NCBI GenBank assembly: GCA_004764695.1
Contig: SMSO01000025.1
Span: forward strand, 310,001-374,000
From: Schizochytrium sp. TIO01
Taxonomy: Eukaryota > Protista > Bigyra: Labyrinthulomycetes
DNA: 64,000 nucleotides
Reading direction: 5' to 3'
The translations under genes and the position numbers were made by a program. A model generated the notes under the pieces. It was not told where the DNA came from. It worked only from the letters and a program-made list of their open reading frames with translations, and made no database searches. Every line of letters begins with the position of its first letter. Position 1 is the first letter of the stretch. Below are positions 16,801-33,008 of this stretch, one piece after another.

Positions 16801-17425
16801 CGATCGATCAATTTTTAAATAGGAAAAATAAAAATTAAACCAAACTAAACTAAACCCAAAAAGCAGAAAGGAAAACCACAGCCAAATAATGAAAACTCAG
16901 CATCATCAAATGGCGATCGTTCGGAGCGGTGCTGATTATGTCCTGATCAGAGCAGCATTCTTCTCTTCGCATTCCTCCTAAGTAGCTAGATGGCAGGTAC
17001 TTAGAGAAAGAAGGAGATCACCGATCGAGTGTTCTTCCTTTCGGTTTCCTTTTGGTTTCCTTTTCGAGCGGAACTTTTATTTGTTTCGGAAACTTCAAAC
17101 ACCGATCCATCAAAAACAGAAAAACACCTTTTAACCTTTTTTTCCCGCTTTTTTTTAAAACTACGAATAAAAAACAAAATTAAAAACCATGTGGATTACT
17201 ATTAACACTACCAGTACCTCCAATTATTTATACCTCAAGTTGTGAATTTTTCTTGAACAAAATCATTTGATTCATTTCAAAATAAAACTCCTTTCTACAG
17301 GAAGTTACTGTTCACTTAAAGTATACCATAGGACTCCTCCATTTATATCGATGTTTCTATAACCAAACCGACGAGTATCTAAGGTAATAGCTATCAAAAG
17401 GTCTACTAAGGCCTTTGTTTACATG

Positions 17426-17453
17426 TGATTCACGGCTCGTCTGCCATGCTGAC
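17426..17453. repeat. Left 8-bp TSD (TGATTCAC) plus left 20-bp TIR
   Basis: tgattcac|ggctcgtctgccatgctgac. Confidence 0.92.
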
Positions 17454-20400
17454 AAAAGTCTCTCTTCCAAAAGAGCAAAAAACTCGCGCTTAGAACGCCT
17501 ATGAATTAATATGGGAGACTCATTGGTGTTCTAGAACAGTGTTCTCAAGGGTGTTCTGGAACGGTGTTCTGTTCTTAGTTCTTATATATTATATGAGTCT
17601 AGCTAACAGTAACGGCGACTTGACTTGAAAACTCAGTCGCTGAAATCTGAGGCGCTTGAGCTTGACTTTGACTTGACATTGCTTGGTTGGGATTTTTGAT
17701 CGCAGCTAAGATTAAATTTAAATGCGTAGACCCCCTTGCGTCAGATCTGGCTGCCCAATAGACCTGTAAATATGAAATATTGTAAACCCTCCAGATTCCA
17801 CGAACAATGTCCATCGCAAATGCCCTACGATAAACTTCATTCATATGTTCATCTTGAATTTCCTGGTGAGCAACTTCTTCAGCTACATCTCCACGCCATA
17901 AAGTATACATTAGAGTAGATACGTGATATCCGCAATCCACACCGTTTTTTTGGTTGCCTCGCCTAATCTCGATCTCCCAGTCTTCAGCTCCAAAAAGACG
18001 GATGGCATCGCCAAATACTTTCATCACGTGGCTCGGTTCATGCAAGGTACTTAATGGGTCGTAAAAGACAACACGCGCTTGCCTTTGGTTAAAATAAAGA
18101 AGCTGCCAATGACTTCCTGTACAAAACGGTAGCATAACATATTCAATGACATCTGGAATATAGATTGACCTCGTTGAGGAGCTGTCCTTTTGAAAATGGC
18201 CTCTTGGTGTGGCATTTGCAATCGCATTGCATACAGACGATATAAACAAATCGTGTCGGTCATCTACCGAACTTGTGAGGAATTGAAGTGCGGTGCTAGG
18301 TACAAATGCGGTTCCGTGACACTTCTTTCTTTCTGCAGGCTTCATAACGCGATTTTCTTCGCAGCAGGTAGCACACCATGCATCCATTGCATCCCCTTGC
18401 ATCCATGATAAAGGTTCCCCGAAAGATTCGGGGTTAGTTGATTCGGAGCATGGCAAGTTCCCATGAGAGTCTAAGAACAGCCTTTGACACATGCCAAACT
18501 CTAGAAACGTATGATTCATAGTGATGTTGTTTGAATGAACAAAGTGTTTTCCACTTGTAAAAACAGAGTGCTTGGGAGAAATGGAGCTCTTCAGAAGACT
18601 GAACACCTTTGCTGAAGCTTTCCAGAACGCTGTGCATTTTGAGTTAAACGTTCGCACAGGTCCTCCTTGTCTTGGTTGCATTTTGACACCGCGTACATTT
18701 CCAACCTTGGGGACATCTACAGTATGTTCTTTAGGGGCTATCGCTTGAGCCCTTCTTTTTTCAGACCCGAAAAAGTCTGTGGGTGGTAAACTGTCCAGGG
18801 CAGAAATTGTTGCTTCGCAGGTCTGAAGTTTGCACTCAGCGCCAAATGGCGTGGGGTGCCCTTCTCTTGGTGCATAGCAAGACTGACAGTACTTGCACTT
18901 GCTCAGATTTTCAGGAGCTCGCCAGATGCTCTTTCGTTTACTTTTCAAATGCTTGAATTGGAAAAAGGTTTGTTGAGGTGCAAGGGGGAAGTTCTTCGTC
19001 ATAATTGACCTCAACTCTGCTGTGTCAAATCGTTCCAGAGAGGGATGCCGAGAGAGGAGTTCTTCGTTTATGATGTTCGCTTCCAGATTGCAACGTGTTG
19101 AATAGTCCAGCTCTCTGATACTTTCCAATAGATGCAAGGGATGCACCAAAGCACCATCTGCAGTAACAGGTACGTCGACCAATGGCTCAGTCATGTGCTC
19201 TAACTTGGACGCTAGCATTAGTTTTCGATTTTTGGCAGAAATGCTATCTCTCTGATTCAGAAAATCTGCATATTGCCTGAGTAGGAACGCCGTCTTTGGT
19301 TTCAGATATTCCCTCAAGTCGCCCGGATGAGAGATCTGCACGGAATCAAGCTTCGGAAGGAAAAGACCGTCAAGATCCCCTGCAGGACAAGCGTATCGAT
19401 TCCACAACTGTGCAAAGCTTTCGAAGCTGTTAGACAGAATGGGCGCAGCTTTTCGATTGAAGTTTTTGGTTTTAAGAAGATATAAATAAAAGTCTTGCTC
19501 CACTTTGTCCTGCTGTTCGGGCTTACCTTTCATTTTGAATGGGCAAGGCGTGCTAGCTCCTATGAGGTCCTTGGGGCGAGGTCTGGCCCAACCAGAGCCT
19601 TTTATGCCGCAAGTTGTATAAGATGCCGACAGTACTTGCTGCTGCTTCTTCCTACATTCCACCGTTTGCTCGGCATCATCCCCACTATTTTCGCTGAGAA
19701 CTCTCTCCCACGAGACGTCATCAGTCAGAGAGGTTCCAGATCGATTTGGCAAAGGATCTTCACAGAATGCAATCCAACGGGTACGGTCAGGCCTTGCCTC
19801 TTCGGCAGGGAACAAGCCTTTTTTTACCCTTGGCGCAGAAGCAAGCTGCGCTTTTGGAAGATTTGTAATATTTTTTCGAACAGAACATCCAATGTGCAGA
19901 TGAATATCAGCGTTTGAGCTACCAACCACTAATTCTGATATTGGGTCATCCTCGTGTTCAGGCGGTTCTAACTGTACGCACGATATTTTGATCCTTTCTT
20001 TAAATTCCTCAGAATCAGAGTCTGTACTTATACAATCTTCAAGAATTTCTACACAAGTTGAAAGGACTCTCTGAACACCAATATCACCTTGAGGTTCAGG
20101 CTTGTCACCGTTCTCTCCTTTAGTGAAAAGGCTGCCGTTTACTAGTATATTCATTGCTATCAGGCGCAAGCTGATGTGGTCTTTCAATTTTTTATCGATG
20201 CCAGCCTCGTCGAGGACTGATCGATCTGTTTCGGTGGGTACCCCTCCTCCCGTTAGTTTTCGAAGAACTTTCTGGAGGTAACTTATGGCTTTTCTTTTAT
20301 GTTCTGGTCGTGCGAGAGCTTTTGCAAAGGCAAATATCACAGCAATGGCTTGCTCTACGGCATGCGCCAGTGTTGAGTTCTCCGTGCTGTCGAAGAAAAT

Positions 20401-23400
20401 CGGCACCACAGTGGCTCGCGTCCTCATTATATGATTAGACTCCAAAACAGAACCAACACTTGGCATCATGCTGAATCCCATATGTAAGTCATGAGAAACG
20501 CACAAAGGCAGTCGTGCATCTGGATAAGGGAGCTCATTATGCTCGATTTTACCATTGAACGCATCATTGACGAGGGAGTTTATCGTGAGGTGGTGGCTGA
20601 ATGGTTGGTGAATTAAATACGAAGGTAAACCTTTTATCTCAATCATTCTGGAACGATTGTATTTAGCAACCACTTTGGTGAGTAGCGCGTCAGCACGAAC
20701 AATACCAATGGTAGCACTTGCAACAGCCTGGTTCAACATACGATGGAACACCTCATTTGCATTAGTACCTCTATTTCCCACAAGATGATTTTTGCCATTG
20801 ATTTTAGTCTGTAGAACGAGACCTGGAGGGTCGCTCAAGCAGCCCTTATGAACATGTTCAAAAAGGCCTGCAATATACTTGTCTAGGCCAACCCCTGTGG
20901 CGGTCTTAGATAAAAATAATCCATGCCGAAACCCATTTGGATAGGGTCCGAAATGTTCTACACAAGCGTTACCAGATCTTGGTTTGCAACGCTCTCGTAC
21001 GCGATGAAGCAGGTCAGCACTGAGATCCATCTTCGAGTTCATAATATAGTGAGTCTTAAAAACTTCCATGATGCGCTTATATAGAACCTCTGGTTGTGGG
21101 ATTCGGGTTTCAACAGCTTGATTGATAAGCCGATCTTTTGTGAAGTTGCTCTTACTCTTATGTTCCTGTTGAACCTGCTTCACTCGCTTGTGGTCGCGCT
21201 GAAGAACAGCGTTTGCTAATGCAGTCATGAATGCAGTACGAGGTGCTCGGCTTTCGTTGCTGCTTTTCACCATTATTTGCTCCCAACGCTTGAGCCAGTG
21301 AAACAAATCGAGCTTGATGGGGACTCCCTTGAAAATTTGTGATAGGCATTTATTTAATTTTCCACAACATGTATCTGTCCAAATACATTCAGGCCGGTAA
21401 TCCCGACCATGCATTTCCTGGCGTAGCTTGACGAATCGTCCTAAAGCTTCTCTTATTTCCCTCTCGTTCTCACTGTTCGCCAACCCACAATAGAATATAA
21501 TCTGGTTGTGTTCGTTACTGATTGTGAGTAGGGCTTGATATGGCTGGTATATCCTAAAGGATTTGTCTTGGTCTTGGAATCGAAGTTTACAGCGCTCGGG
21601 AAACCGGAACGTGCAATCGATAGCGATATACCTGGCGCTGTATGACGCAATTTCGCGAAGCAAAGGTCTTGCCTCTCCTTTAAACTGGTCAATACATAAT
21701 TCGTCGAGAAATTTGGAGCTTAATCGATATCCGTTGTACTCCATGTCGAAGTTGCCAAAATTTTCAGGAGCCGTGATTGATTTCTCTTGCGTTTCTTCTT
21801 CATTTGAGCACGATGCTGATTGATTTGTCTGGTCGACCTGTTTGCTCGCTTGCTCAGCTGCTTGCTCGGCAGATTCTTTATTGATCTTGTCTCGGGCAAG
21901 TCGCTCGTTGCGCTGCTGGATAACCATTCGAGCATACTCCACGCTCAGTAAGTCCTTTTCTCGGAGTATCTGGTTGATTGTAGTCTCCAAAAGTTCTTTC
22001 CAACCCTCTATAACCCTCGTTCGGTCCCTCTCACGTCGAGCAGTGCTGAGTTGCTTGATTTTCTCGCCGTTTTTTGTATCTAGGATGTTCTTAAGCTCAT
22101 GGAAGACATCAACAACTGTAGAGATATTGAGAGCAGACTTTAGGATTTTAATCTTTTTTTCTCCCAAACTCTTGATTTGCTTTAAATCAAATTCCAGTAA
22201 TTCACGAGCAGCCGTCTCCTTTCTCAAAACCTCAGCAGAACATTTTTCGGGCTGGAATTGAATCTTAGATTTGAGCGTATTTGTCGAGTTCACTGCTTGC
22301 TTTTGAAAAAAACTTGGGATTGTATTGGGGCCAGCTTCATCGAAGCGCCGAGTGTGTTCTCCTAAGCTTGATGCATAGTAAAAGTACTCTAGACGATTAT
22401 GGTTCCGTACCTGAGCCTCATTGAAAGCATCTGCAGCCCACGCGGGACTTTTCAACCACAATTGGCTGAGACGTTGGCTAACCTCTGTTTCAATCCCGTG
22501 GCGTGGGGTTAAGGTCAGGCCAAAGCGTATCCGTACGTCAGCAGGGCACAAACGAAGAACATCCTCACTTGTATTGCGAAACTCTTTATTGCACTTTTTA
22601 CATTTATACTTTCGAGCCACGAGAAACCAATTTGCAGTCGCACCAGCAATCTCTCGGTAATTTGGTGCCCAGAAGCCATCGTCACCAGAGACGCTGACAA
22701 GAGGTTCACCCAAATGCGCTTTTTGGTTGCAGTATGGACATGGCATGCGATTGTTCATCGACGCATACATTTTTGCTGGATGCCATAACCCAACGCTGCG
22801 CTGGTGAAAGTACTCTGGTGCAATTTGTTGACCTCTTTTTACTTTCGGCAGTTTGGGTTTCTGGAGCCAAGTGATTGTCCCATCAGGAACAATGTCGTAC
22901 AGGGACTGGCATGTTTTGATATCCATTTTATCAAGTGTGTCTTTGCAGCTGTCGATAAATTTTTGTTGGATTAAGGTGATCGTAGTCTCGCGCTTCTCCT
23001 CATCTACATTAGCGCTTTCATTTAAGCCTTCCAGATCCTTTCTGATATCCTCATGACTCAAGGATTCCTGATCATTGTCCCCGGGAGTGGCTGTCGCCTG
23101 GCGAAGCTTGCAACGTGATGAAAATTGCATCATTTTCGTGTTTGATGTTTACCTCGTTGTTGAGTTTCGCTACCTCAAAGTATCATTTAATATGCCCTGA
23201 TCATCCAGTGAATATTTCCAAGTCTCTTTGCACATGTATTCGAGCCCAAGGAATACGAGCTTAACCACCATCAAAGTCCAGTATTAAATTGCATCAGTGA
23301 AACGTCGGCGTAGTATTCGTTGAGGTGGATGTGCCAGTTTACCAGAAATATGTAACATCCTTGTGAGGAGACCCAGTGGTGATACACTTAATTATTTTCA

Positions 23401-23669
23401 GTGGAATTAGAGGAAGATTATCACTGAGTGTTCTTGCTAAAACCAGTAACAAAATTCATAAAGAGTTTTAAATTAAAAGCTAAATGTCATGCCGCGTCCC
23501 ACAGTTAAAGCCATATATCTTATAAAATGCATATCAAAAAACTCGCCAACACAATGATTTTGTGAGGAAAAGTAGAATTTCCCCCCAGATTTTCGCCTGT
23601 TCTCTCCTATGTTCTCTCCCCCCCCCGCGAGTTTTTTTTTTGAGCTCACGTCAGCATGGCAGATGAGCC
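17434..23669 (-). mobile_element. Intact TIR DNA transposon, 6236 bp, of the DxxH-type DDE group (Mutator/MULE-related), encoding a transposase-Ulp1 protease fusion
   Basis: Left end GGCTCGTCTGCCATGCTGAC (17434-17453). Right end GTCAGCATGGCAGATGAGCC (23650-23669) is its reverse complement with 1 mismatch. Both ends are flanked by TGATTCAC (17426-17433, 23670-23677). A single 1844-aa transposase-like ORF lies inside. Confidence 0.92.
17599..23133 (-). CDS. Transposase (DDE with DxxH) fused to a C-terminal Ulp1/peptidase C48 SUMO protease
   Basis: N-terminal CPYC...YKCKKC Zn motif. Candidate catalytic residues YIAIDCTF (D ~21617), IWTDTCC (D ~21374), KLDLFHW (DxxH ~21298-21309) and RGTNANEVFH (E ~20753). 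C-terminal WMQGDAMDAW, GSHWQL (H), FYDPL (D) and QKNGVDCG (Q, C) form the Ulp1 triad and oxyanion Gln. The ORF sits between the TIRs. Confidence 0.85.
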   Translation of the reverse strand: MMQFSSRCKLRQATATPGDNDQESLSHEDIRKDLEGLNESANVDEEKRETTITLIQQKFIDSCKDTLDKMDIKTCQSLYDIVPDGTITWLQKPKLPKVKRGQQIAPEYFHQRSVGLWHPAKMYASMNNRMPCPYCNQKAHLGEPLVSVSGDDGFWAPNYREIAGATANWFLVARKYKCKKCNKEFRNTSEDVLRLCPADVRIRFGLTLTPRHGIETEVSQRLSQLWLKSPAWAADAFNEAQVRNHNRLEYFYYASSLGEHTRRFDEAGPNTIPSFFQKQAVNSTNTLKSKIQFQPEKCSAEVLRKETAARELLEFDLKQIKSLGEKKIKILKSALNISTVVDVFHELKNILDTKNGEKIKQLSTARRERDRTRVIEGWKELLETTINQILREKDLLSVEYARMVIQQRNERLARDKINKESAEQAAEQASKQVDQTNQSASCSNEEETQEKSITAPENFGNFDMEYNGYRLSSKFLDELCIDQFKGEARPLLREIASYSARYIAIDCTFRFPERCKLRFQDQDKSFRIYQPYQALLTISNEHNQIIFYCGLANSENEREIREALGRFVKLRQEMHGRDYRPECIWTDTCCGKLNKCLSQIFKGVPIKLDLFHWLKRWEQIMVKSSNESRAPRTAFMTALANAVLQRDHKRVKQVQQEHKSKSNFTKDRLINQAVETRIPQPEVLYKRIMEVFKTHYIMNSKMDLSADLLHRVRERCKPRSGNACVEHFGPYPNGFRHGLFLSKTATGVGLDKYIAGLFEHVHKGCLSDPPGLVLQTKINGKNHLVGNRGTNANEVFHRMLNQAVASATIGIVRADALLTKVVAKYNRSRMIEIKGLPSYLIHQPFSHHLTINSLVNDAFNGKIEHNELPYPDARLPLCVSHDLHMGFSMMPSVGSVLESNHIMRTRATVVPIFFDSTENSTLAHAVEQAIAVIFAFAKALARPEHKRKAISYLQKVLRKLTGGGVPTETDRSVLDEAGIDKKLKDHISLRLIAMNILVNGSLFTKGENGDKPEPQGDIGVQRVLSTCVEILEDCISTDSDSEEFKERIKISCVQLEPPEHEDDPISELVVGSSNADIHLHIGCSVRKNITNLPKAQLASAPRVKKGLFPAEEARPDRTRWIAFCEDPLPNRSGTSLTDDVSWERVLSENSGDDAEQTVECRKKQQQVLSASYTTCGIKGSGWARPRPKDLIGASTPCPFKMKGKPEQQDKVEQDFYLYLLKTKNFNRKAAPILSNSFESFAQLWNRYACPAGDLDGLFLPKLDSVQISHPGDLREYLKPKTAFLLRQYADFLNQRDSISAKNRKLMLASKLEHMTEPLVDVPVTADGALVHPLHLLESIRELDYSTRCNLEANIINEELLSRHPSLERFDTAELRSIMTKNFPLAPQQTFFQFKHLKSKRKSIWRAPENLSKCKYCQSCYAPREGHPTPFGAECKLQTCEATISALDSLPPTDFFGSEKRRAQAIAPKEHTVDVPKVGNVRGVKMQPRQGGPVRTFNSKCTAFWKASAKVFSLLKSSISPKHSVFTSGKHFVHSNNITMNHTFLEFGMCQRLFLDSHGNLPCSESTNPESFGEPLSWMQGDAMDAWCATCCEENRVMKPAERKKCHGTAFVPSTALQFLTSSVDDRHDLFISSVCNAIANATPRGHFQKDSSSTRSIYIPDVIEYVMLPFCTGSHWQLLYFNQRQARVVFYDPLSTLHEPSHVMKVFGDAIRLFGAEDWEIEIRRGNQKNGVDCGYHVSTLMYTLWRGDVAEEVAHQEIQDEHMNEVYRRAFAMDIVRGIWRVYNISYLQVYWAARSDARGSTHLNLILAAIKNPNQAMSSQSQAQAPQISATEFSSQVAVTVS

Positions 23670-23677
23670 TGATTCAC
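23650..23677. repeat. Right 20-bp TIR plus right 8-bp TSD (TGATTCAC)
   Basis: gtcagcatggcagatgagcc|tgattcac. Confidence 0.92.
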
Positions 23678-24922
23678 TATTACTATTAGCAACACTACTA
23701 CTACTACTATGACGACGTATAGGCATGCCTATCTATCATCTATCTATTCAGCGTATATACATGGATCCAGATCTACTTAGTGCCGAGCTAGCATAAACGC
23801 TAATCAAGGCACCGACCCATTGCAGATCTTGGATGGAACATACGAAAGAGAACGGAACGCCCGTTCAGGGCACCCTACCAATGGTATTAAATAACTCTAC
23901 ACTAGCATTGACCCAGCCGTTCTGTTCTCTCTGAAATACCTTGCACCCTGTTCTTGTTCTGTTCTTTCTTTGTTGGGATAGTTAATAATGTATACCTGAC
24001 TGGCCTCTATATGGTCGACGTCCATCAGTTAGTTAGAACTGATTAGTTAGTTAGTCAGCTAGTGACTACCTAGGTACATAGGTACGTGATACTTAGCTAC
24101 CTCCATGATCTTCTTCTTCTTTTTCTTCTTCTTCTTCGGCGAGTGCGTAGAAAGTGGGAGAAAGCTGGAGCAAAGATGCGAAGGAGACTGAAATACTGCA
24201 GACGAAGGCAGTTTGATGCATGATATTCGTTTATTAGTTTGTTGATGATGAATAGCAACTAACTTGACGTAACCGCGTTTTCTTCTATGCTAGTTTTTCT
24301 TTGAATAAATTAATGTAAAAGAATGTTTACTTTATAGATTGTAATAGCAATAATAAACCCAGTAGATACTATCTTTTTAAAAGAAAAGAAAAAGAAGTTT
24401 ACCACTACTTCATTACTCATTTTATAATTTTAATTAAATTAAGATATCTTTTAAGCTCTAAACATTTTTACTTGTTTTATTATTATTTTTATTATTTTTT
24501 AAGTACTATGTCAACGCTAAGTACATACTAGCAGGTAATCTAGACATCAATATTTAGTATGGAAAATATGCGCACAAAGTACTGCCATTCGAATAAATGG
24601 ACAGATGTCATCAAGTTTCCCCCTCTCCTGCATTTCCCCATACATTAGTCACCTGCTTCCAGAGGTCTTGGAGAACTTGTATCTAGAGCTGAAGCGCAAG
24701 AAAGCTATTGTGGAGCTGTAGCAAAGGATAGAAGCAGAGATCTCGCGATGATCCCAGATAGGCGTCTGCTTGCCTGCTGCTTGGACCTCCTGGCCGCCTG
24801 ACTGCCTTCAGGGATGCCTGCCTGTGTGGCCAGCTGGCTGTTGTTTTGGCTGCGTGGCGTGGCATTTCTCCGCGCAGACGGAAGAGACGGATGCGATGGT
24901 GTTTTTCCCGTGGTCTCTTTCA

Positions 24923-24996
24923 TCTTTGTTTCTTTGTTTCTTTGTTTCTTTGTTTCTTTGTTTCTTTGTTTCTTTATTTCTTGTTTCTTTGTTTCT
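24923..24996. repeat. Tandem repeat (TTTCTTTG)n
   Basis: tctttgtttctttgtttctttgtttctttg..., about 8-9 units with minor degeneration. Confidence 0.8.
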
Positions 24997-25356
24997 AGCG
25001 GTTTGCTAAGTACACACGTAATGAGCTGGTAGAGCAATTATCATTGTATTCTATGGGTGTTCTTTTCTTGTCATTGTTCTTGTTAGAGTGAACTTTAAAG
25101 TATTATAATTATCAATAGAACGTTTGTTTTGGAGTTCCTGCGTATGTACGTACTAGATTTCGCGTAATTTCGTGAGGTCTCCGTTTCAGGTTGCGGTTTG
25201 ATTGACTGGCGCAAAAACAGCATTGCAAATACGGCTTTATCCAAAACCGTGACGAGGTGCATGCAGGCTTGAGGGCGAATGTTGCTCACTAATTTCACAC
25301 GATTGGATCCCGTGTTTTCTGGTTCCCAGCAGTAATTTCCAACGAAGGACTACTAC

Positions 25357-25387
25357 ATTTAACATTTAACATTTAACATTTAACATT
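25357..25387. repeat. Tandem repeat (CATTTAA)n
   Basis: acatttaacatttaacatttaacatttaacatt. Confidence 0.7.
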
Positions 25388-27951
25388 AAAATTAAATTTA
25401 AAAGAAAACATAGAAAAGAAGAAAGGAAAGAAGAAAGAAATGAACGAATTCGAAACACCAACAAGATTTGACATTCTGCTGAGACGCTCGATGAATATGA
25501 TAGGCACTCTGTTGATTTCTTTGGTCTTAGCGTATCGATTAAACGAGGCCTCTATGACGGTTTTAATTCTATGCCTTGATTTTGATATGCTTTTTGGTTT
25601 GCTCTGAGTGTTCAGATTGATTCATTTCAATTTCACTCATCACAATCCTCCTGAACACTGACCAGGACAAAATGAAAGAAAAGTCACTCATGAAGTGCAG
25701 ACCATTAAATAAATAAAAGTTGTGGTGACAGATGATAATATCTTCTCGTACTCTGTTGGTCGAGTGGTAAAGAAGGTACATACTTTTGAAGGCGCAAATT
25801 CTCAGACAAACATTCACCTGTTTCTAGCAGGGTTGTCCAGAAAAGTGCAGGAGACATCATCGATAATTCACAAGAGGAACAATATTTATCTCTTTTTTCC
25901 ATAAGTAGAGCAGAACAAATGTCTTTTTAGTGCGTTTTTGCGATTTCTATATAGTCTGTTGTTCTAAAAACAAACTCAGATCAAAGCAAGTCCCTCGTGC
26001 AAATCAAATTGACTAACGTGCTGTACACCTTTGTTTCATAATTGTCAAGGGTTCAACAATCACCTTTCATCGGTGTCTTATGTAGTTCCATTCTCATTTT
26101 TGTGCTATGGTATGCCATGCCATGATTTTTTAAAAATTTGTTTTTAAAGCATACCTTAGGGTACACCAATGCCAAGAACCCTACGGCTATGAATTACGAT
26201 CCGTTCACACCTATTATAGAGGCAAATATAAGAAAGGAACCTGGTGATAGCGCAGGGGGTCAACGTGGATCAACTGCGTATGTTGGGCGGTGTCCGGATG
26301 GGTTCTCACTTTATCATATTGATAAATAAGAGTCTTGGTCAATGACTGCAAAATAAAATCCTCAAGATAAGAATTATTCCTCAGGTTTCTGCAGAGTCTT
26401 CATAGGTAGAATCAATCATGGTCTCTACCATAAGTTGATGCATGGTCAGCTTGCGAATCCAAAACTAGAGAGATAAAATAGCAAAGTATCTGTAAACAAC
26501 CTCGGAGACGCCATGAAAGAACGATGGAGTACCTACCAAGCTTTCACGCGGTATTTCAGTATTAGTTTTAATCAAGGTGCCAGGCGGACTAAAAATGTAA
26601 TATAGTCCAATGCTCATGCTTATATAGTATTCTGAAGAAAAGGAAAAGTAACTTTGAAAGGAAAGAAAATCAACAAAGAACGGACACCGCCAGGACATCG
26701 TATTATTCGTAAGTGTGACGATGTTTAGAAATGTGCATCGCGAGACTAATTCATCTAGATATACAAACTAGGATGTGTGAGGACAAATCACACACACAAA
26801 TATTATTCAATTTTAGGAGTCAAGAGGCCTGCGCAATGGCTTTTTAAGACTCTGAGCAGCCATCGCACATTTATTGAGAAGCTCAAAACTTGAGTCCTCT
26901 CGCACAGAAAATTGATAAAACATTTACAGACCATTTTGCTTCGTTGTGGAGAGTACAGCGGGGATGAGGGGGCCAGTCTCATTTGCTTTGTGCTGCGGTA
27001 CCTTAGACTCTATGAATGTAAAAAAAGATTATGCAATTTAAGCAAGTGCTGCAACGTTGGCTCTCGTGAGCCTGCCCGCACCGCCGCAGTCATTTTAGGC
27101 ACCACAACTGTAAAATTCTGTGTACTGGAGTGCGCAGGACAGTTTCCGTATTCGGCAATATAAGCAAGAGTCGGGAGATGTACCGAAAGACAAGCAACAG
27201 AAATGGATGGAAGTAATTGCGTTGCCATGCTTGGTATGTGTCTTGGACAACCTTCTCGTCTATATTTACATGACATTAGCCGTATGTGGTTTGTCCGAGT
27301 GGGCGGTTTTAAAACGAGAAGGACTATGTAGGAATCTTTTCTGTTTTTTTGGAGCTCTTTAATCGGGATTCATTCCGCAAGTACTGAAAGTGACTTAAGT
27401 CAAATCAGCGTGAAGTTTATGATGCGTCTGTTGAGGAGAACAAACGCCATATGATAATGCAGATATTCTTTTTCATAATGTAAACCTCAGTGGACACACA
27501 TGATAGGATGGTAGGTATAAATAAAGGAGTCGTGTTAAAATAAACATCAAGAAACATGGAATCTTTATAATATTGTGTTACATGGTTTGATTATTTTGCC
27601 ATTCCACACCATCGCCATCGTCATAAAGAATGGGATAGTAAGTATACTATTTAGAACTCCATAAATCAAATGACATGGATTTACAATATGATCTAAATTG
27701 AACATCAGAAAAGGGCTGGCTCACATTCAAGGCGGTCAGCATGGAGTATAAAGTAGAACTTTCACGGGATCCCGGTGTGTAAATTGCAAGCTAGCAGCAG
27801 AAGCTACGTAGCAAACTTGCGAATCAAGCAGCTGTTTTGAACCAGAAGAAAAATGAGCATAGAAATCAGAATAACGTTCATTCCCATGTGCACCTGCTCT
27901 TCCGTATGATTCAAGGTTGCTTGCACTTCGCCCAACGCATTTAATCGCAAC

Positions 27952-28428
27952 TCAAGGATTATTATTAGTGCTTAGCATTGTACAAGGCTCCTCGCCTGTC
28001 GCACTTATCCGGTTCATGTACGACTTACGAACACGAGTTCTGCATGTCCTGAAAAGGTTCAAAGATGTTGCTTCGAACTTTTTGCAAGCAAGATACCGCA
28101 TAGCTTCGTCTTCGTTAAGACAGTCTTGTGAAAACAGAGCATTCTCCTTCTTGTCCATGTTTGAGAACTCGAACAGATCAAGTTCGCTCTCCAGAAACTC
28201 ATACTTTGGTTCGCGAACAATATTCTCTGCACTCCAGCGACGCTGTTCTTCCGTGCCGTGAAGATCATCGTCTTCGAAGCTCAATGGTGCTCGAAGTGAT
28301 CGGCCTGAAATAAGATCAGACACGGTTTGTACCGGTCCTAGCATTACTTCTGAAGCTTCTCCACATACCAGAAGGGTATGCCCTACAATGAAGGCGACTA
28401 CAATTGTGAATCTCTCGACACCTCCCAT
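27952..28428 (-). pseudogene. Signal-peptide-bearing ORF, possibly the 5' part of a decayed secreted or Golgi protein gene
   Basis: MGGVERFTIVVAFIVGHTLLVCGEA resembles a signal peptide. The frame continues with protein-like sequence past the TGA (VAIKCVGRSASNLESYGRAGAHGNERYSDFYAHFFFWFKTAA*). It could instead be a short intact or spliced gene. Confidence 0.4.
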
Positions 28429-31400
28429 GGCAAAGTTCCCTTTCACTGTTCTGCTTGTGTCCGAGGCGTCCAACGCTGTGCGGTCTCACTTTTTGCTCAA
28501 ACAATTTAGTCGTCCTGCGACTGCTATGAGCTGATTCCCTCTAACCGCTCGTCCTGGTTCGAATTAGGTTTTGGATGGAGCTAATATTTTTCACTGGGCA
28601 AATTCCAGGTTAGTACCACTCAGCTACGCAATACTCTAGTCTACTGGTGTCTTATTCTTAAGCAGGTTTTCCATCATAAAAGGCAAGCTTCAGCCTTTTC
28701 CTTCGATAACCATTCTATGACAACATTGGATGCAAAGAATGTGCAGCTCGTGTTCTTCAATGCGAGACATCGTTCATTGCAACTCATAATCTTGGAGTCT
28801 TTCATTGCTTCAGAGGTGACACAAGTTTTCACCAGCCAAAATATTACAGAACCCGCTATCGCTTCATGAGAGATAACTTACTCAGCCGGACAAGCGAGAG
28901 TGAGGACCTCGAATTAATTGTACAACACAGGGACGAAGAGGCATTTTGCACCCCCGTGAGTTGAAGAGTGTAGAACATCAGCTTTGTCTTGGAGATAGTG
29001 AAAATAGTAAGCGTATGTACCTGTACCTACTTTGGCGTTAGTATTCATATATTGAATTACCTTGCCTTGGCAAAAACGAAGAACTACTTACTCGGCCGCT
29101 TGCAGGCGAGGAGAAACGAAGACTCAGCTTGGATACTTCTTGTGCAGCAAACAAACTATTCACCTTGCATGGACAGGGTGTCCGCAAGTACCAGAACAAG
29201 TTGGCATGCAACGATAATTCTCTAAATTGTGCTTTTCTTCTCTATTTCCTCTTTCTGCTTTTAGTCTTTACTCTTTAGTCTTTCTTTCTTTCTATCTTGT
29301 ATTTAGTTAGTTATTTAGTCATTTTTCTGAAGAAGGAAAAAAACGATCAAATTTAATTTTTTTGTTCTTTTTTTTTTATGATCAATCAAGAAAATATTGA
29401 TGAAGCCAAACCAGGAATGAATCTCATTGAGGGAATGGCTCGCCGCAACATAAGGTTCTGTGAAATGCACTTAACGCAGACGGGGCTTCGAAACTACTGA
29501 TCCACGTGTATTTGAATGGAATCCGGCCTTCGATCCAAGAACGATAGCATCATAATTGACCAACTCTTCCAGTAGAACTAGGCCTTCTAAACTTCTAGGC
29601 AACTATTAGATGCTACAGAAAATAATGAAACCAAAAAATGACAATCGTGTACAATGATTGATCACTTATGTAGGTAGCTATTTCAAAACTCGCTTTCACT
29701 TTCTTGCCGTTGCTTATGCTTTTCTTTCTTGGTTTCATGCAGCTGCTGTAGTACGTCGTTCACAAGACTAAATCACAGCGGAAGATGCATGAAGATGTCC
29801 GTCACTGATGTCGGCTTACCATGGGTGGCACAGCTGACGTCAAAGAACACTACCACAAGCACACTTTAAGGAGACGCAGTTTTGAAAGAGGTCATAGATC
29901 GATAAGTTCACTTTTCAGGGTCCGAGGTCATTAGCAAATACATCAACACATCCCAAGGTCAAACTCTGATTGCGGATCCATTGGTCTAGGTTTTCAAGAA
30001 CGGATATCAGTAGATGCAGCAATTCCGACAAAGCTCGCAAGCATGTAAGCAATGTACAAATAAAACAACAAAACCAAACTAGTCTTACTGTCCTTCGAAC
30101 AAGAGCCGAGCAGAGTCCAGGATTATGAAAACGCCTCAGGTTTTTGAGAAGCTGTATTTTTTGTCCCCAAAGCTCGGACAGGAAAAATAAAAACAAAGCA
30201 TCAAAGAAAAATCTAAGGATTCGGGTGTGGTGAAAATTGCCGTAGTTGATTGCTACAGCTCAAACCTGTCATATACCCTTACCGACTCAGTGTGAACCGC
30301 AAAGTTGCGAGCTCTCAACCCGAATATGAAGATAATATATATTTATAACCTTTGAAAACCTGAAACTAGACCATTTCAGAACTCATAACTTGGTTGAACT
30401 CTGTTCTGTATCTTCACCTAGACCCACATTTGTCAAATAGAAATATCACATGTATTGCTGCATATAGTCTCAAGCTGAGCACGATTGAATGCTCGATGGT
30501 GGACAGAATTTGCAAAAGGACTTTTTTTATTTTTTTAAAAATTGTTTTTAAAAATAAATATTTAAAAGACATATATTATAAATAATAATAGTAACAATGA
30601 AAACGAAATGGCAATGTAGATTATATCAAATGGTGAAATGAATCAGCTGGAGTAACCTATTGCCTCCACGAAGCCGTTTATGGAAATTGAAGAGGTCTAG
30701 TAGATTGACGCTGATGCCCAATGTGACCAAACAAGAAAGCAAGTGTTAGTGCTAGTGCTAATCTAACGTTTGATCTCCTCCTCCTCCAAAGATCAAACGT
30801 TGTTATGATTGGCTTCGTTTATTTCATTTATTAGATACCTAGCCTTATTCAGTATCTTTGTCGCCGCCTTAAAATATCGCATAATGCTATCTTGGAGTAG
30901 GACAGCCCCAAGTTATTAATTCACCACTCTTCAGGCCCATTTCCCCTAGTTTGACCTCGAGGGAATATTGTTCTGTCCAGGCAGGTTTTAGGGATCAAAT
31001 CTCCAAGAAGTGAACATCATCGACAGCGATCATATAAACACAGCCGAGCTCATTGTAGCGTTATCTAATATAATCCATTAGAATTTAATTCGATACCTGA
31101 TATGTGGGGGTTCAAACTCATGAGGAAAAACGTCTTCGCTTGAGGAATTGGAGCTAGCTACTCATAGAAAGTATGCGCACGCCTGACAAAGTAGCCTGAC
31201 AAAGTAGAATCAATGTGCGAATCGTGAATAATTTAAACTTAGAAGGCCCCAGGTAGTCTACATCTCACGGCTATCGATATCTTCAGGTTGAAAATATTTA
31301 TTTATTTTCCCATCAATCCTAGCCTGAGGCCTAAGCATACTACTACAGACGACATGATGCACAAAAGGTTGGGATTTTACTTCTAGATGATGAGCACGGA

Positions 31401-33008
31401 ATCGCGCTCAAGGTAAACCCTCGAGATGAGGTAACATTTATACTGCGAGGAAGTAGCAAACACTCATCCTGGCCTGAACCTCTCTTTGGAGGTGCAAATA
31501 TTGGGCTCTACTTGTCGCTGGCCTATAAGATCATCCCCAAGACTCTATAACGGTAATACAAAGTGGGGTTTTATATGCTTTAGATGTAAATGAGGATGCT
31601 GGGAGGTGCACTTTTCACCTGGAATGCCTAAACCTAGCGCGCGGGAGGGGGGGGGGGGGCATCCAGAAATGTGGTAGTTTTGTGCAAAGCTCTGAATAAA
31701 CTATATAAGGCTGCATTTCACTTTCTTCTTCCGAGTAGACAATCTAAAATGGGCTAATGTTGCTATTAGTGCGTGCAAGGGTCTAGAGTGCCTAAACTAT
31801 GGGGCAAGCTCGTGCACACATTTTTTGATCAGTGAATTTTACCGGCCAAGTTATTTTAAAGTTTATCTTCAACCTTTCGAGACATCGAATTTCCTCAGTT
31901 TAACGTGTAACGTTTCTGGTCGTTGAAAACTAAGATGCTTGTTATGGCCAATCGACTATAAGTGAAGACCATGTAATTACAGAAAATCGCAATTAGGTTT
32001 ACAATTCAATCAGCATTTCTGGGCTTGCATTTTATTTGTGCAACCGTGATTCGTCTAATACCAATATGTTTAGCCAGAGTCGCGCAGAAACTTAGGCTAA
32101 TTCCCTTTTAAAATGCGTTTAAAGATAACTTTACGTTTTGCATTTACTTTTCGGCCCTTCCAGTTCTGAGCATGGGCTTTCAATCCTCCACAGCACTGTA
32201 TAAACTTGTGCACCCATTCACTGAAACTCAGGTTTCCTTGTCAAACTCGGCGCCTCAAACAAAGTAAAGCAAAAAGCATTCTCATCAAGCTATTCGTAGA
32301 CTTGGTATCTCCCAGCGTGCTTTATGATCTCAAAATGTGGGATTATCTTGGCTGCATATATGTATGCTCTTCCTCCCCTAGACATTTGAAGAGCCAGGAT
32401 GTAGCCAAGCTACCAATCCTCATTTCAACACCCTTTATTCGCATTCATTTATCATAGCAAGCAGACAATCAATGAAGCAAGCAAACAAGCCTTGATCAAC
32501 AACCCGATAGCTAGACGGTTAGCCTCCCGAATAAAGTCCCGACAAATCTAGCGAGACTATCACCAAAACGCAACTCACGATCTCAAAGTCAAGTCAATAT
32601 CTCGGCTAAAGCGCTGCGTTCCAACCCGCCCCTCCTCAAAAGAACACCGCGCCTTGCCACTCCTATACCTTTATAACCAATCCCTACTACCACCTGTTCT
32701 CTTCTTGAAGTTGCCATCAGTCTTAAAGAGTCTTATAGTTTCGATATATAAGCCACCTCATAATGACGCTTTATGTGATTTGGCGGCGCTGACCACGTTT
32801 AGCCTACTTGTTATGATGCCTTCAACTGAGTTATAGGATCTTTAAAGTGACTTATCAGGAAATAACCAATAGTAGAGTGAAGTCACAAGTAGGATATAGC
32901 GCGGTGGTCACTGTGCGGGCTTTGAGGAGCGAGCTGCTGCTGACTCAGCAGATTGCCAAAGTAGTCCGCGCTCGCGAGCAGCGGAAGCAAGCACCTCTCC
33001 GCGCCGCG

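Follow-up and report, generated by a model that had tools for sequence, protein, structure and literature searches.

Elements of the ISL3 family make 8-bp duplications, have inverted repeats that start GGCTCTT and encode D-x-F-H after the second Asp. The clades of Mutator-like elements (MULEs) show target site duplications (TSDs) of 8-11 bp and terminal inverted repeats (TIRs) of 14-500 bp (PMC6446971), and the significance of their (C/D)xxH motif has been described (PMC5499845). An accessory gene with Ulp1 is present in non-TIR MULEs of plants and has been linked to escape from silencing (PMC13317346). Zisupton has an 8-bp TSD (PMC12730594), and Zisupton sequences, the original one included, have been analysed under the Pfam model PF18758 (PMC9297572). 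Here we describe a transposon of 6,236 bp that spans positions 17434-23669 of a 64,000-nt stretch of Schizochytrium sp. TIO01 contig SMSO01000025.1 (the window, to which all plain coordinates below refer). It is very probably an intact, autonomous cut-and-paste DNA transposon (class II, TIR) that has been mobile very recently, with its catalysis of excision and integration predicted. In one and the same reading, which takes in autonomy and mechanism and which we hold with high confidence, the element is assigned to a distinct, barely annotated eukaryotic lineage, called DUF6729-type here, within the MULE/IS256-hAT-P ((C/D)xxH) group.

Structure, copies and empty site of the element

The ends, repeats and single open reading frame (ORF) of the element are arranged as follows.

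17426-17433, unstranded: left TSD copy, 8 bp, TGATTCAC, read from the sequence; a single TGATTCAC lies between the flanks in other strains
17434-17453, plus strand: left TIR, GGCTCGTCTGCCATGCTGAC, on the 3' side of the transposase gene; start point of all genomic copies
17473-17488, plus strand: second, imperfect inverted-repeat block at the left end, GAGCAAAAAACTCGCG, which pairs with 23626-23647
17526-17571, plus strand: four subterminal GGTGTTCT repeats with a spacing of about 12-13 bp, candidate transposase-binding sites
17599-23133, minus strand: single intron-less ORF of 1,844 codons, a transposase-protease fusion, with no internal stop and the same in all five copies
23134-23649, minus strand: 5' leader or promoter region of 516 bp, whose outer part, with the right TIR, is common to an older 1.4-kb non-autonomous family
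23598-23615, plus strand: two subterminal TGTTCTCTCC repeats at the right end, oriented like those on the left, read from the sequence
23626-23647, minus strand: right partner of the second inverted-repeat block, GAGCTCAAAAAAAAAACTCGCG read inward, found by reading from both ends
23650-23669, minus strand: right TIR, GGCTCATCTGCCATGCTGAC read inward, from the sequence, a repeat finder and the genomic copies
23670-23677, unstranded: right TSD copy, 8 bp, TGATTCAC, from the sequence, the genomic copies and the empty site

The left end (17426-17453) thus reads TGATTCAC followed by GGCTCGTCTGCCATGCTGAC, and the right end (23650-23677) reads GTCAGCATGGCAGATGAGCC followed by TGATTCAC. The TIRs pair over 20 nt with one mismatch (19/20; 95% complementary in the repeat finder), and the second imperfect block lengthens the TIR to about 45-55 bp, with an indel. 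Shuffled sequence would lead one to expect 0.04 occurrences of the TIR pattern in the window, and exactly two were observed; genome-wide, 27 TIR-like sites with at most one mismatch were found against 0 for the reversed control pattern. The terminal and duplication structure is far beyond chance. The ORF takes up 5,535 of the 6,236 bp (89%) and is the sole long ORF of the element. An earlier note on this DNA, made from the letters alone, had described GGC-ended TIRs of 20 nt with one mismatch, an exact flanking 8-bp duplication (TGATTCAC at 17426-17433 and at 23670-23677) and an unbroken 1844-codon ORF filling about 90% of the element, and all of these are as it described them.

The genome searched is a 64-Mb assembly of 37 contigs. 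It contains five full-length copies, the one in the window and four more whose ends coincide with the TIRs, with 0 mismatches over 6,236 bp. Each copy is flanked by a perfect 8-bp TSD and the five TSDs all differ (TGATTCAC, CTTTGCTC, TATGTGTG, ATAAGTCT and ACCAAGTG). An internal-deletion derivative of 2,073 bp (G000:C34:3980596-3982668; L012:1501-3573) consists of the left 0.8 kb joined to the right 1.3 kb with both TIRs kept, and its TSD (CTTCAATA) is also perfect, which brings the insertions with perfect, differing 8-bp TSDs to six. No interrupted long ORF was found among these six TSD-bearing insertions. An older copy of 5,958 bp is 98% identical and has a TSD matching at 7/8 positions; two further copies are truncated at the end that bears the 3' part of the ORF.

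The older non-autonomous family of about 1.4 kb (L013-L030, e.g. L021:1501-2927) has at least 30 copies with TIR-like termini GGCACATCTGCCATGCTGAC. Only about 310 bp at the right (5') end of the element (window 23359-23670) are common to this family and the element, at 70-87% identity. The family copies are only 70-92% identical among themselves and their amplification is therefore considered older; no TSD is recognisable any longer in this family, and none is preserved at copy L021. The derivatives are trans-mobilisable.

Logan contigs of four other runs (X2, X3, X9 and X16), which carry no copy-number information, were aligned to window positions 16900-22899. A 587-nt contig of run X9 (organism F) matches 17296-17433 and then continues with TATTACTATTAGCAACACTACTACTACTAT, which is identical to the window sequence from 23678 on, just past the right TSD. 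This left flank-to-right flank junction recurs in a contig from run X3 (organism C). In both runs the left flank and a single TGATTCAC are followed directly by TATTACTATTAGCAAC, which is the empty site. The window insertion is therefore polymorphic and the 8-bp repeat is a true TSD. The element itself is also present in X9 and X3, with 8-13 differences over about 2,480 nt (about 99.5% identity). In runs X2 and X16 other, unrelated sequences adjoin the TIR, so that the insertion sites there are different ones. The earlier note had called the element intact and probably recently active. It had proposed a genome search for more copies with different 8-bp TSDs and for non-autonomous derivatives, and had predicted an empty site. 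The search found such copies and derivatives, the empty site is present in the contigs of runs X9 and X3, and five identical copies, distinct TSDs, a deletion derivative with its own TSD and empty sites in two other strains bear out the view of an intact and recently active element.

Between strains (runs X3 and X9), the element differs by 0.3-0.5% (17434-19923) and the adjoining flank by 2-3.6% (140-200 bp of 17227-17433), figures that come from a small sample. The element may be younger than the strain split, having arrived via introgression or horizontal spread. Alternatively, its low divergence may reflect nothing but coding versus intergenic constraint. The strain variants are distributed unevenly along the ORF: codons up to 900 (20434-23133) have 8 synonymous and 4 nonsynonymous variants, and codons above 900 (17599-20433) have 4 synonymous and 15 nonsynonymous ones, a proportion near that expected under neutrality from 1,200 synonymous and 4,332 nonsynonymous sites. 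The distribution indicates purifying selection on the transposase part (codons up to 900). The middle and C-terminal region appears to evolve almost neutrally at short range, though the protease residues are conserved at long range.

The 1-kb flanks on both sides of the window copy are single-copy. To the right of the insertion, positions 24001-32000 contain no ORF of at least 250 aa and have a GC content of 39-41%, against 45-49% elsewhere in the window.

The transposase-protease protein and its relatives

Four features were recognised in the 1,844-aa protein, all on the minus strand.

22471-22872, minus strand: DUF6729 domain, aa 88-221, with CPxC...W...CxxC, a presumed zinc-binding DNA-recognition module (Pfam, alignment A2, AlphaFold2 (AF2) model)
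20599-21717, minus strand: predicted RNase H-like DDE catalytic domain, spanning aa about 473-845 and interrupted by an all-alpha insertion domain (alignment, AF2 model and fold match)
18817-18897, minus strand: Cys-rich motif CxYCxxC...GH...FGxxC, aa 1413-1439, within the middle part of the protein, which has no other annotation; also present in the family consensus
17815-18147, minus strand: Ulp1/SENP-type cysteine protease, Peptidase_C48, aa 1663-1773 (Pfam and conserved residues)

The N-terminal domain matches Pfam DUF6729 (PF20499) with 35.7 bits against a cut-off of 27 (E 9e-9), and four cysteines of the domain are conserved in alignment A2. The AF2 model of the N-terminal region (aa 60-330, window 22144-22956) has a pLDDT of about 95 over 190 residues. 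Against PDB structures, Foldseek found no match to this model at E<=0.001 and the best VIA match (Z 4.6) covered a helix only, which does not in itself show a new fold. On this model DUF6729 may be a zinc-binding fold so far undescribed. Its position and zinc-type motif suggest that it binds DNA. There are 17 DUF6729 matches in the genome. In the literature search DUF6729 was not mentioned.

Alignment A1 of the core comprises aa 430-900 and 37 homologues (38 sequences). D587, C589, C590, D609, H612 and H760 are invariant in it, and D506, W613, C765 and E794 are near-invariant. The putative catalytic set is D506, D587, D609xxH612-W613 and E794, with a D(80)D(206)E layout in which the D-x-x-H-W motif (D609-L-F-H612-W613) sits 22 residues past the second Asp. 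The AF2 model built on A1 (pLDDT 80.8, pTM 0.77) shows the order beta1-3 (D506), alpha, beta4 (D587), alpha, beta5 (D609), a long helical insertion and the helix with E794. According to this model the core is an RNase H-like fold with an intact D, D, E triad. The fold matches to the model were as follows.

ISCth4 (IS256 family; PDB 6XG8/6XGX): Foldseek E 5e-4, VIA-align Z 13.4 over 245 residues; best fold match
Retroviral integrase cores: Foldseek E 7e-3 or weaker, VIA-align Z 9-11 over about 130 residues
Hermes (hAT): Foldseek E 2e-2, VIA-align Z 9.3 over 253 residues
P element transposase: Foldseek E 1.4e-3, VIA-align Z 8.6 over 250 residues

A sequence search of the whole protein against PDB gave no match, and the motif-bearing region (IDCTF to RGTNANEVFH) is not covered by any Pfam model above cut-off. 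The motifs that the earlier note had picked out were located at aa 505 (IDCTF), 585 (WTDTCC), 607 (KLDLFHW) and 788 (RGTNANEVFH). It had looked to this region to model as an RNase H-like DDE fold with (C/D)xxH, on which the AF2 model and the fold matches agree, and the resemblance to DUF6729-type proteins that it had suggested proved correct, with PF20499 matching aa 88-221 above cut-off.

At the other end of the protein, Peptidase_C48 (PF02902) is matched with 36 bits against a cut-off of 20.7 (E 8.2e-9). The protease set H1675, D1692, Q1728 and C1734 does not vary between three paralogous families, which share only 25-29% identity over this region, and the family profile matches Ulp1 and SENP structures (8.5e-9). 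The C-terminal 285 aa alone found nothing in PDB by sequence search at E<=0.01. The protease may remove SUMO-like modifiers to favour transposition.

Relatives were collected with HMMER, using aa 60-1000 against 1.84 billion cluster representatives. Only 229 cluster representatives were found at E<=1e-3, and the nearest full-length ones are 23-30% identical. Few of them have names: hypothetical proteins of the thraustochytrid Hondaea fermentalgiana, one of which is called 'DUF6729 domain-containing protein' in UniRef, and a transcript of MMETSP0960. We take the MMETSP0960 sample to be Aurantiochytrium limacinum; the taxon id of the record points instead to an unrelated fungus. One relative was matched in an aquaculture metagenome. 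Taken with a GC content of 45% and the 64-Mb genome, these matches make a thraustochytrid the probable host. The protist setting envisaged in the earlier note fits, the sole named relatives being the Hondaea fermentalgiana proteins and the MMETSP transcript.

Within the TIO01 genome, two sister families have DUF6729, core and C48 (L031:3714-9218, minus strand, 1,834 aa; L032:3290-9010, plus strand, 1,906 aa) and a third (L033:3481-8232, plus strand) is without C48. They are 27-32% identical to the query where this is measurable, and there are further loci (L036-L041). Deletion derivatives of the L031 type, about 2.3 kb long, occur in at least six places in the genome. A TSD plus TIR scan, which recovers the window element, found none in L031, L032 and 31 metagenomic relatives. 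The sequence TTCTAAAC was considered as a TSD of L031 and rejected: homology runs on beyond TTCTAAAC.

A maximum-likelihood tree built from 26 cores groups the query with L032 and L031 in a single clade (support 97/94). The path lengths are 1.5-2.3 substitutions per site and the diversification of the three is therefore old. The nearest neighbours of this clade in the tree are long proteins (1,600-2,147 aa), which are separate from a large clade of shorter ones. Among the distant relatives, P0005 and P0011 have all three parts, and P0033 has core and C48 with no DUF6729 match. The three-part architecture recurs in sister families and distant relatives. Fusion with the protease is therefore a widespread trait of the lineage and not a local accident.

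Metagenomes and prokaryotes were searched for related loci with a 9-sequence alignment as query. This yielded 31 metagenomic loci, nearly all from microbial-mat samples. Among 185,579 prokaryotic species genomes there was one match, a 5-kb contig (L078; PXBV01000325.1, from a metagenome-assembled genome labelled 'Psychroflexus sp.') that has a DUF6729 ORF and, after it, this DDE core. The contig is probably mis-binned eukaryotic DNA. Neighbouring clusters in the ESM-Atlas are those of DUF6729 and one from oomycetes that bears the name 'MULE transposase domain-containing protein' (score 0.93); Mutator, IS256 and ISL3 clusters lie at about 0.8.

Placement among the described superfamilies

The element works like a MULE/IS256-type transposon yet fails the sequence-defined membership of MULE, hAT and Zisupton. 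The foremost alternative is that it is a divergent member of Mutator/MULE (MuDR in Repbase terms), comparable to the Spectre clade with its 8-bp TSDs or to the Ulp1-carrying Kaonashi (KI-) MULEs, which we consider rather unlikely. With MULE and IS256 elements it shares the modelled RNase H-like DDE core with an alpha-helical insertion and the (C/D)xxH motif followed by W, and its best structural match (ISCth4, Z 13.4) belongs to the IS256 family, the prokaryotic kin of MULEs. The 8-bp TSD lies inside the 8-11 bp range of MULEs, for which the TIR range is 14-500 bp (PMC6446971), and the TIRs start with GG as in MULEs. Ulp1 is known from plant MULEs (PMC13317346), a neighbouring ESM-Atlas cluster carries the MULE name, and the Pfam MULE model PF10551 matches the core weakly (E 0.0085) in the region from the second Asp to CxxH.

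However, the PF10551 match scores 16.9 bits, below the cut-off of 27.6, and the Transposase_mut model does not reach its threshold. PF10551 matches 3 of the 38 relatives at E<=5. The genome scan with this model found only one gene (L046:166-2859, minus strand; G000:C4 ~670673-673366) and missed all five copies of the element. By hhalign, the family profile against this canonical MULE gave a probability below 1%, in a low-power comparison; the core against thin bacterial IS256 and ISL3 profiles was not significant either, and neither was an ISL3-vs-IS256 control. DUF6729 stands where MULEs would have WRKY/FLYWCH, SWIM or CCHC fingers, none of which had a Pfam match in the protein at E<=1, and the protein is about twice the usual MULE size. 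The KI-MULEs and VANDAL elements of plants also have a transposon-borne, long-conserved Ulp1/C48 domain. There it is a separate, captured accessory gene, whereas here it forms the C-terminus of the transposase, fused in frame, and recurs in the DUF6729 lineage. The earlier note had judged that the protein does not match canonical MuDR or hAT, and this held: MULE is sub-threshold (16.9 vs 27.6 bits) and the hAT, KDZ, P and Kolobok models have no match at E<=1.

The L046 gene, which encodes 897 aa with a MULE domain and a SWIM finger, has no relation to the element and is single-copy by the PF10551 search.

The commonest transposase signal among the relatives comes from the ISL3 model DDE_Tnp_ISL3 (PF01610), which matches 5 of the 38 at E<=5 (best 7.6e-4, read as sub-threshold) and gives no match to the query protein itself. 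Another relative-level signal is a weak match of one relative to the MULE-derived ZSWIM1-3 RNase H-like model. The element resembles ISL3 in these sub-threshold matches. Unlike the element, ISL3 members are bacterial, 1.2-1.5 kb long and without DUF6729 or protease.

That the element belongs to Zisupton/KDZ is very unlikely. Its 8-bp TSD and a protein above 1,300 aa fit published Zisupton (PMC12730594, PMC9297572); the very large single transposase and the patchy eukaryotic distribution are further likenesses. However, the KDZ model PF18758, which is matched by the original Zisupton and relatives (PMC9297572), has no match in the query protein at E<=1. The lists of families matched by the 38 relatives lack it, both at E<=0.01 and, for the 25 of 51 families shown, at E<=5; a genome search with it found no match, and the controls of that search gave none either. 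The weak profile signals all point toward ISL3 and MULE. In the 2012 description by Bohne et al., Zisupton TIRs are reportedly about 99 bp long, whereas those of the present element are 20 bp.

An origin within the hAT or P superfamily appears extremely unlikely. The 8-bp TSD, the short TIRs (20 bp), the (C/D)xxH motif and the helical insertion domain fit these superfamilies, the flank-hairpin mechanism proposed below is a hAT feature, and Hermes (Z 9.3, 253 residues) and the P element (Z 8.6; Foldseek E 1.4e-3) are among the fold matches. These matches are weaker than that of ISCth4, which is clearly higher (Z 13.4). The protein has no hAT dimerisation (PF05699), BED or THAP domain at E<=1, and for the 38 relatives the 25 of 51 families shown at E<=5 include no hAT, P, Kolobok or KDZ model. 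The terminal sequences are YARNG in hAT and CATGATG in P elements, unlike the GGC termini found here. The suggestion that the copies are not mobile at all, but a host gene multiplied by segmental duplication or an artefact of assembly, had nothing found in its favour and can practically be dismissed, as the copy boundaries equal the TIRs to the base, each copy has a different perfect 8-bp duplication, the flanks are unique, and independent assemblies of other strains contain the empty site.

We therefore return to the reading of the element as an autonomous, DUF6729-type member of the (C/D)xxH group. Several points weigh against it. No transposition, excision footprint or transcript was directly observed, and the one run labelled 'RNA?' among those aligned has contigs of 49 kb and is probably DNA. 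Assembled copies in two other strains are frameshifted near the N-terminus (1 bp is lost at 22306 in X3, and CT is inserted after 22812 in X16), and some carriers may lack an active element. Placement relative to the named superfamilies comes from structure and sub-threshold profile matches (MULE 0.0085; ISL3 down to 7.6e-4 in 5 of the 38 relatives), the DNA binding of DUF6729, the hairpin route and the function of the protease are inferred, and the lineage may already be named in Repbase or Dfam.

Proposed mechanism and biological meaning

In the mechanism that we propose, the zinc module of DUF6729 would recognise the 20-bp TIRs and the subterminal TGTTCT repeats (GGTGTTCT/TGTTCTCTCC). The catalytic core (D506/D587/E794 and D609xxH612-W613) would excise the element and attach its 3'-OH ends to the target across an 8-bp stagger; once repaired, this stagger would yield the 8-bp duplication. 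Excision may proceed via a hairpin formed on the flank, the route demonstrated for the MULE Muta1. This route is suggested because (C/D)xxH-W and long TSDs are common to MULE and hAT and because the fold is closest to the IS256 family. The C48 protease could act on chromatin or silencing factors of the host, or on the transposase itself, and by stripping off SUMO-like modifiers would favour transposition.

A bolder interpretation is possible, but on balance doubtful. In it, an unnamed eukaryotic DDE superfamily, 'DUF6729-type', sister to MULE/IS256 or the eukaryotic counterpart of ISL3, has in this element its first member that is both complete in structure and demonstrably mobile. The marks of this superfamily would be a zinc DNA-binding domain of new fold, 8-bp TSDs, short GGC-ended TIRs and an ancestrally fused SUMO-type protease that counters host silencing.

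For the lineage reading itself, the element gives DUF6729 a role: the domain forms the N-terminal part of a DDE transposase, and Pfam has no model for the catalytic core of that enzyme. Many proteins from fish, cnidarians, oomycetes and metagenomes that are listed as 'hypothetical' become interpretable as remnants of transposases. An element-level definition of the DUF6729 lineage is also supplied, in the form of the TIR, the 8-bp TSD, the subterminal repeats, the non-autonomous derivatives and the empty site; such a definition is what classification against MULE, hAT, P and Zisupton needs. Thraustochytrids are used industrially for omega-3 oil. Given its apparent present activity, seen in five identical copies and polymorphic insertions, the element could cause strain instability, and it is a candidate endogenous tool for insertional mutagenesis. 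With its conserved in-frame Ulp1, the transposase is well suited to studying why SUMO proteases have been gained by mobile elements again and again.

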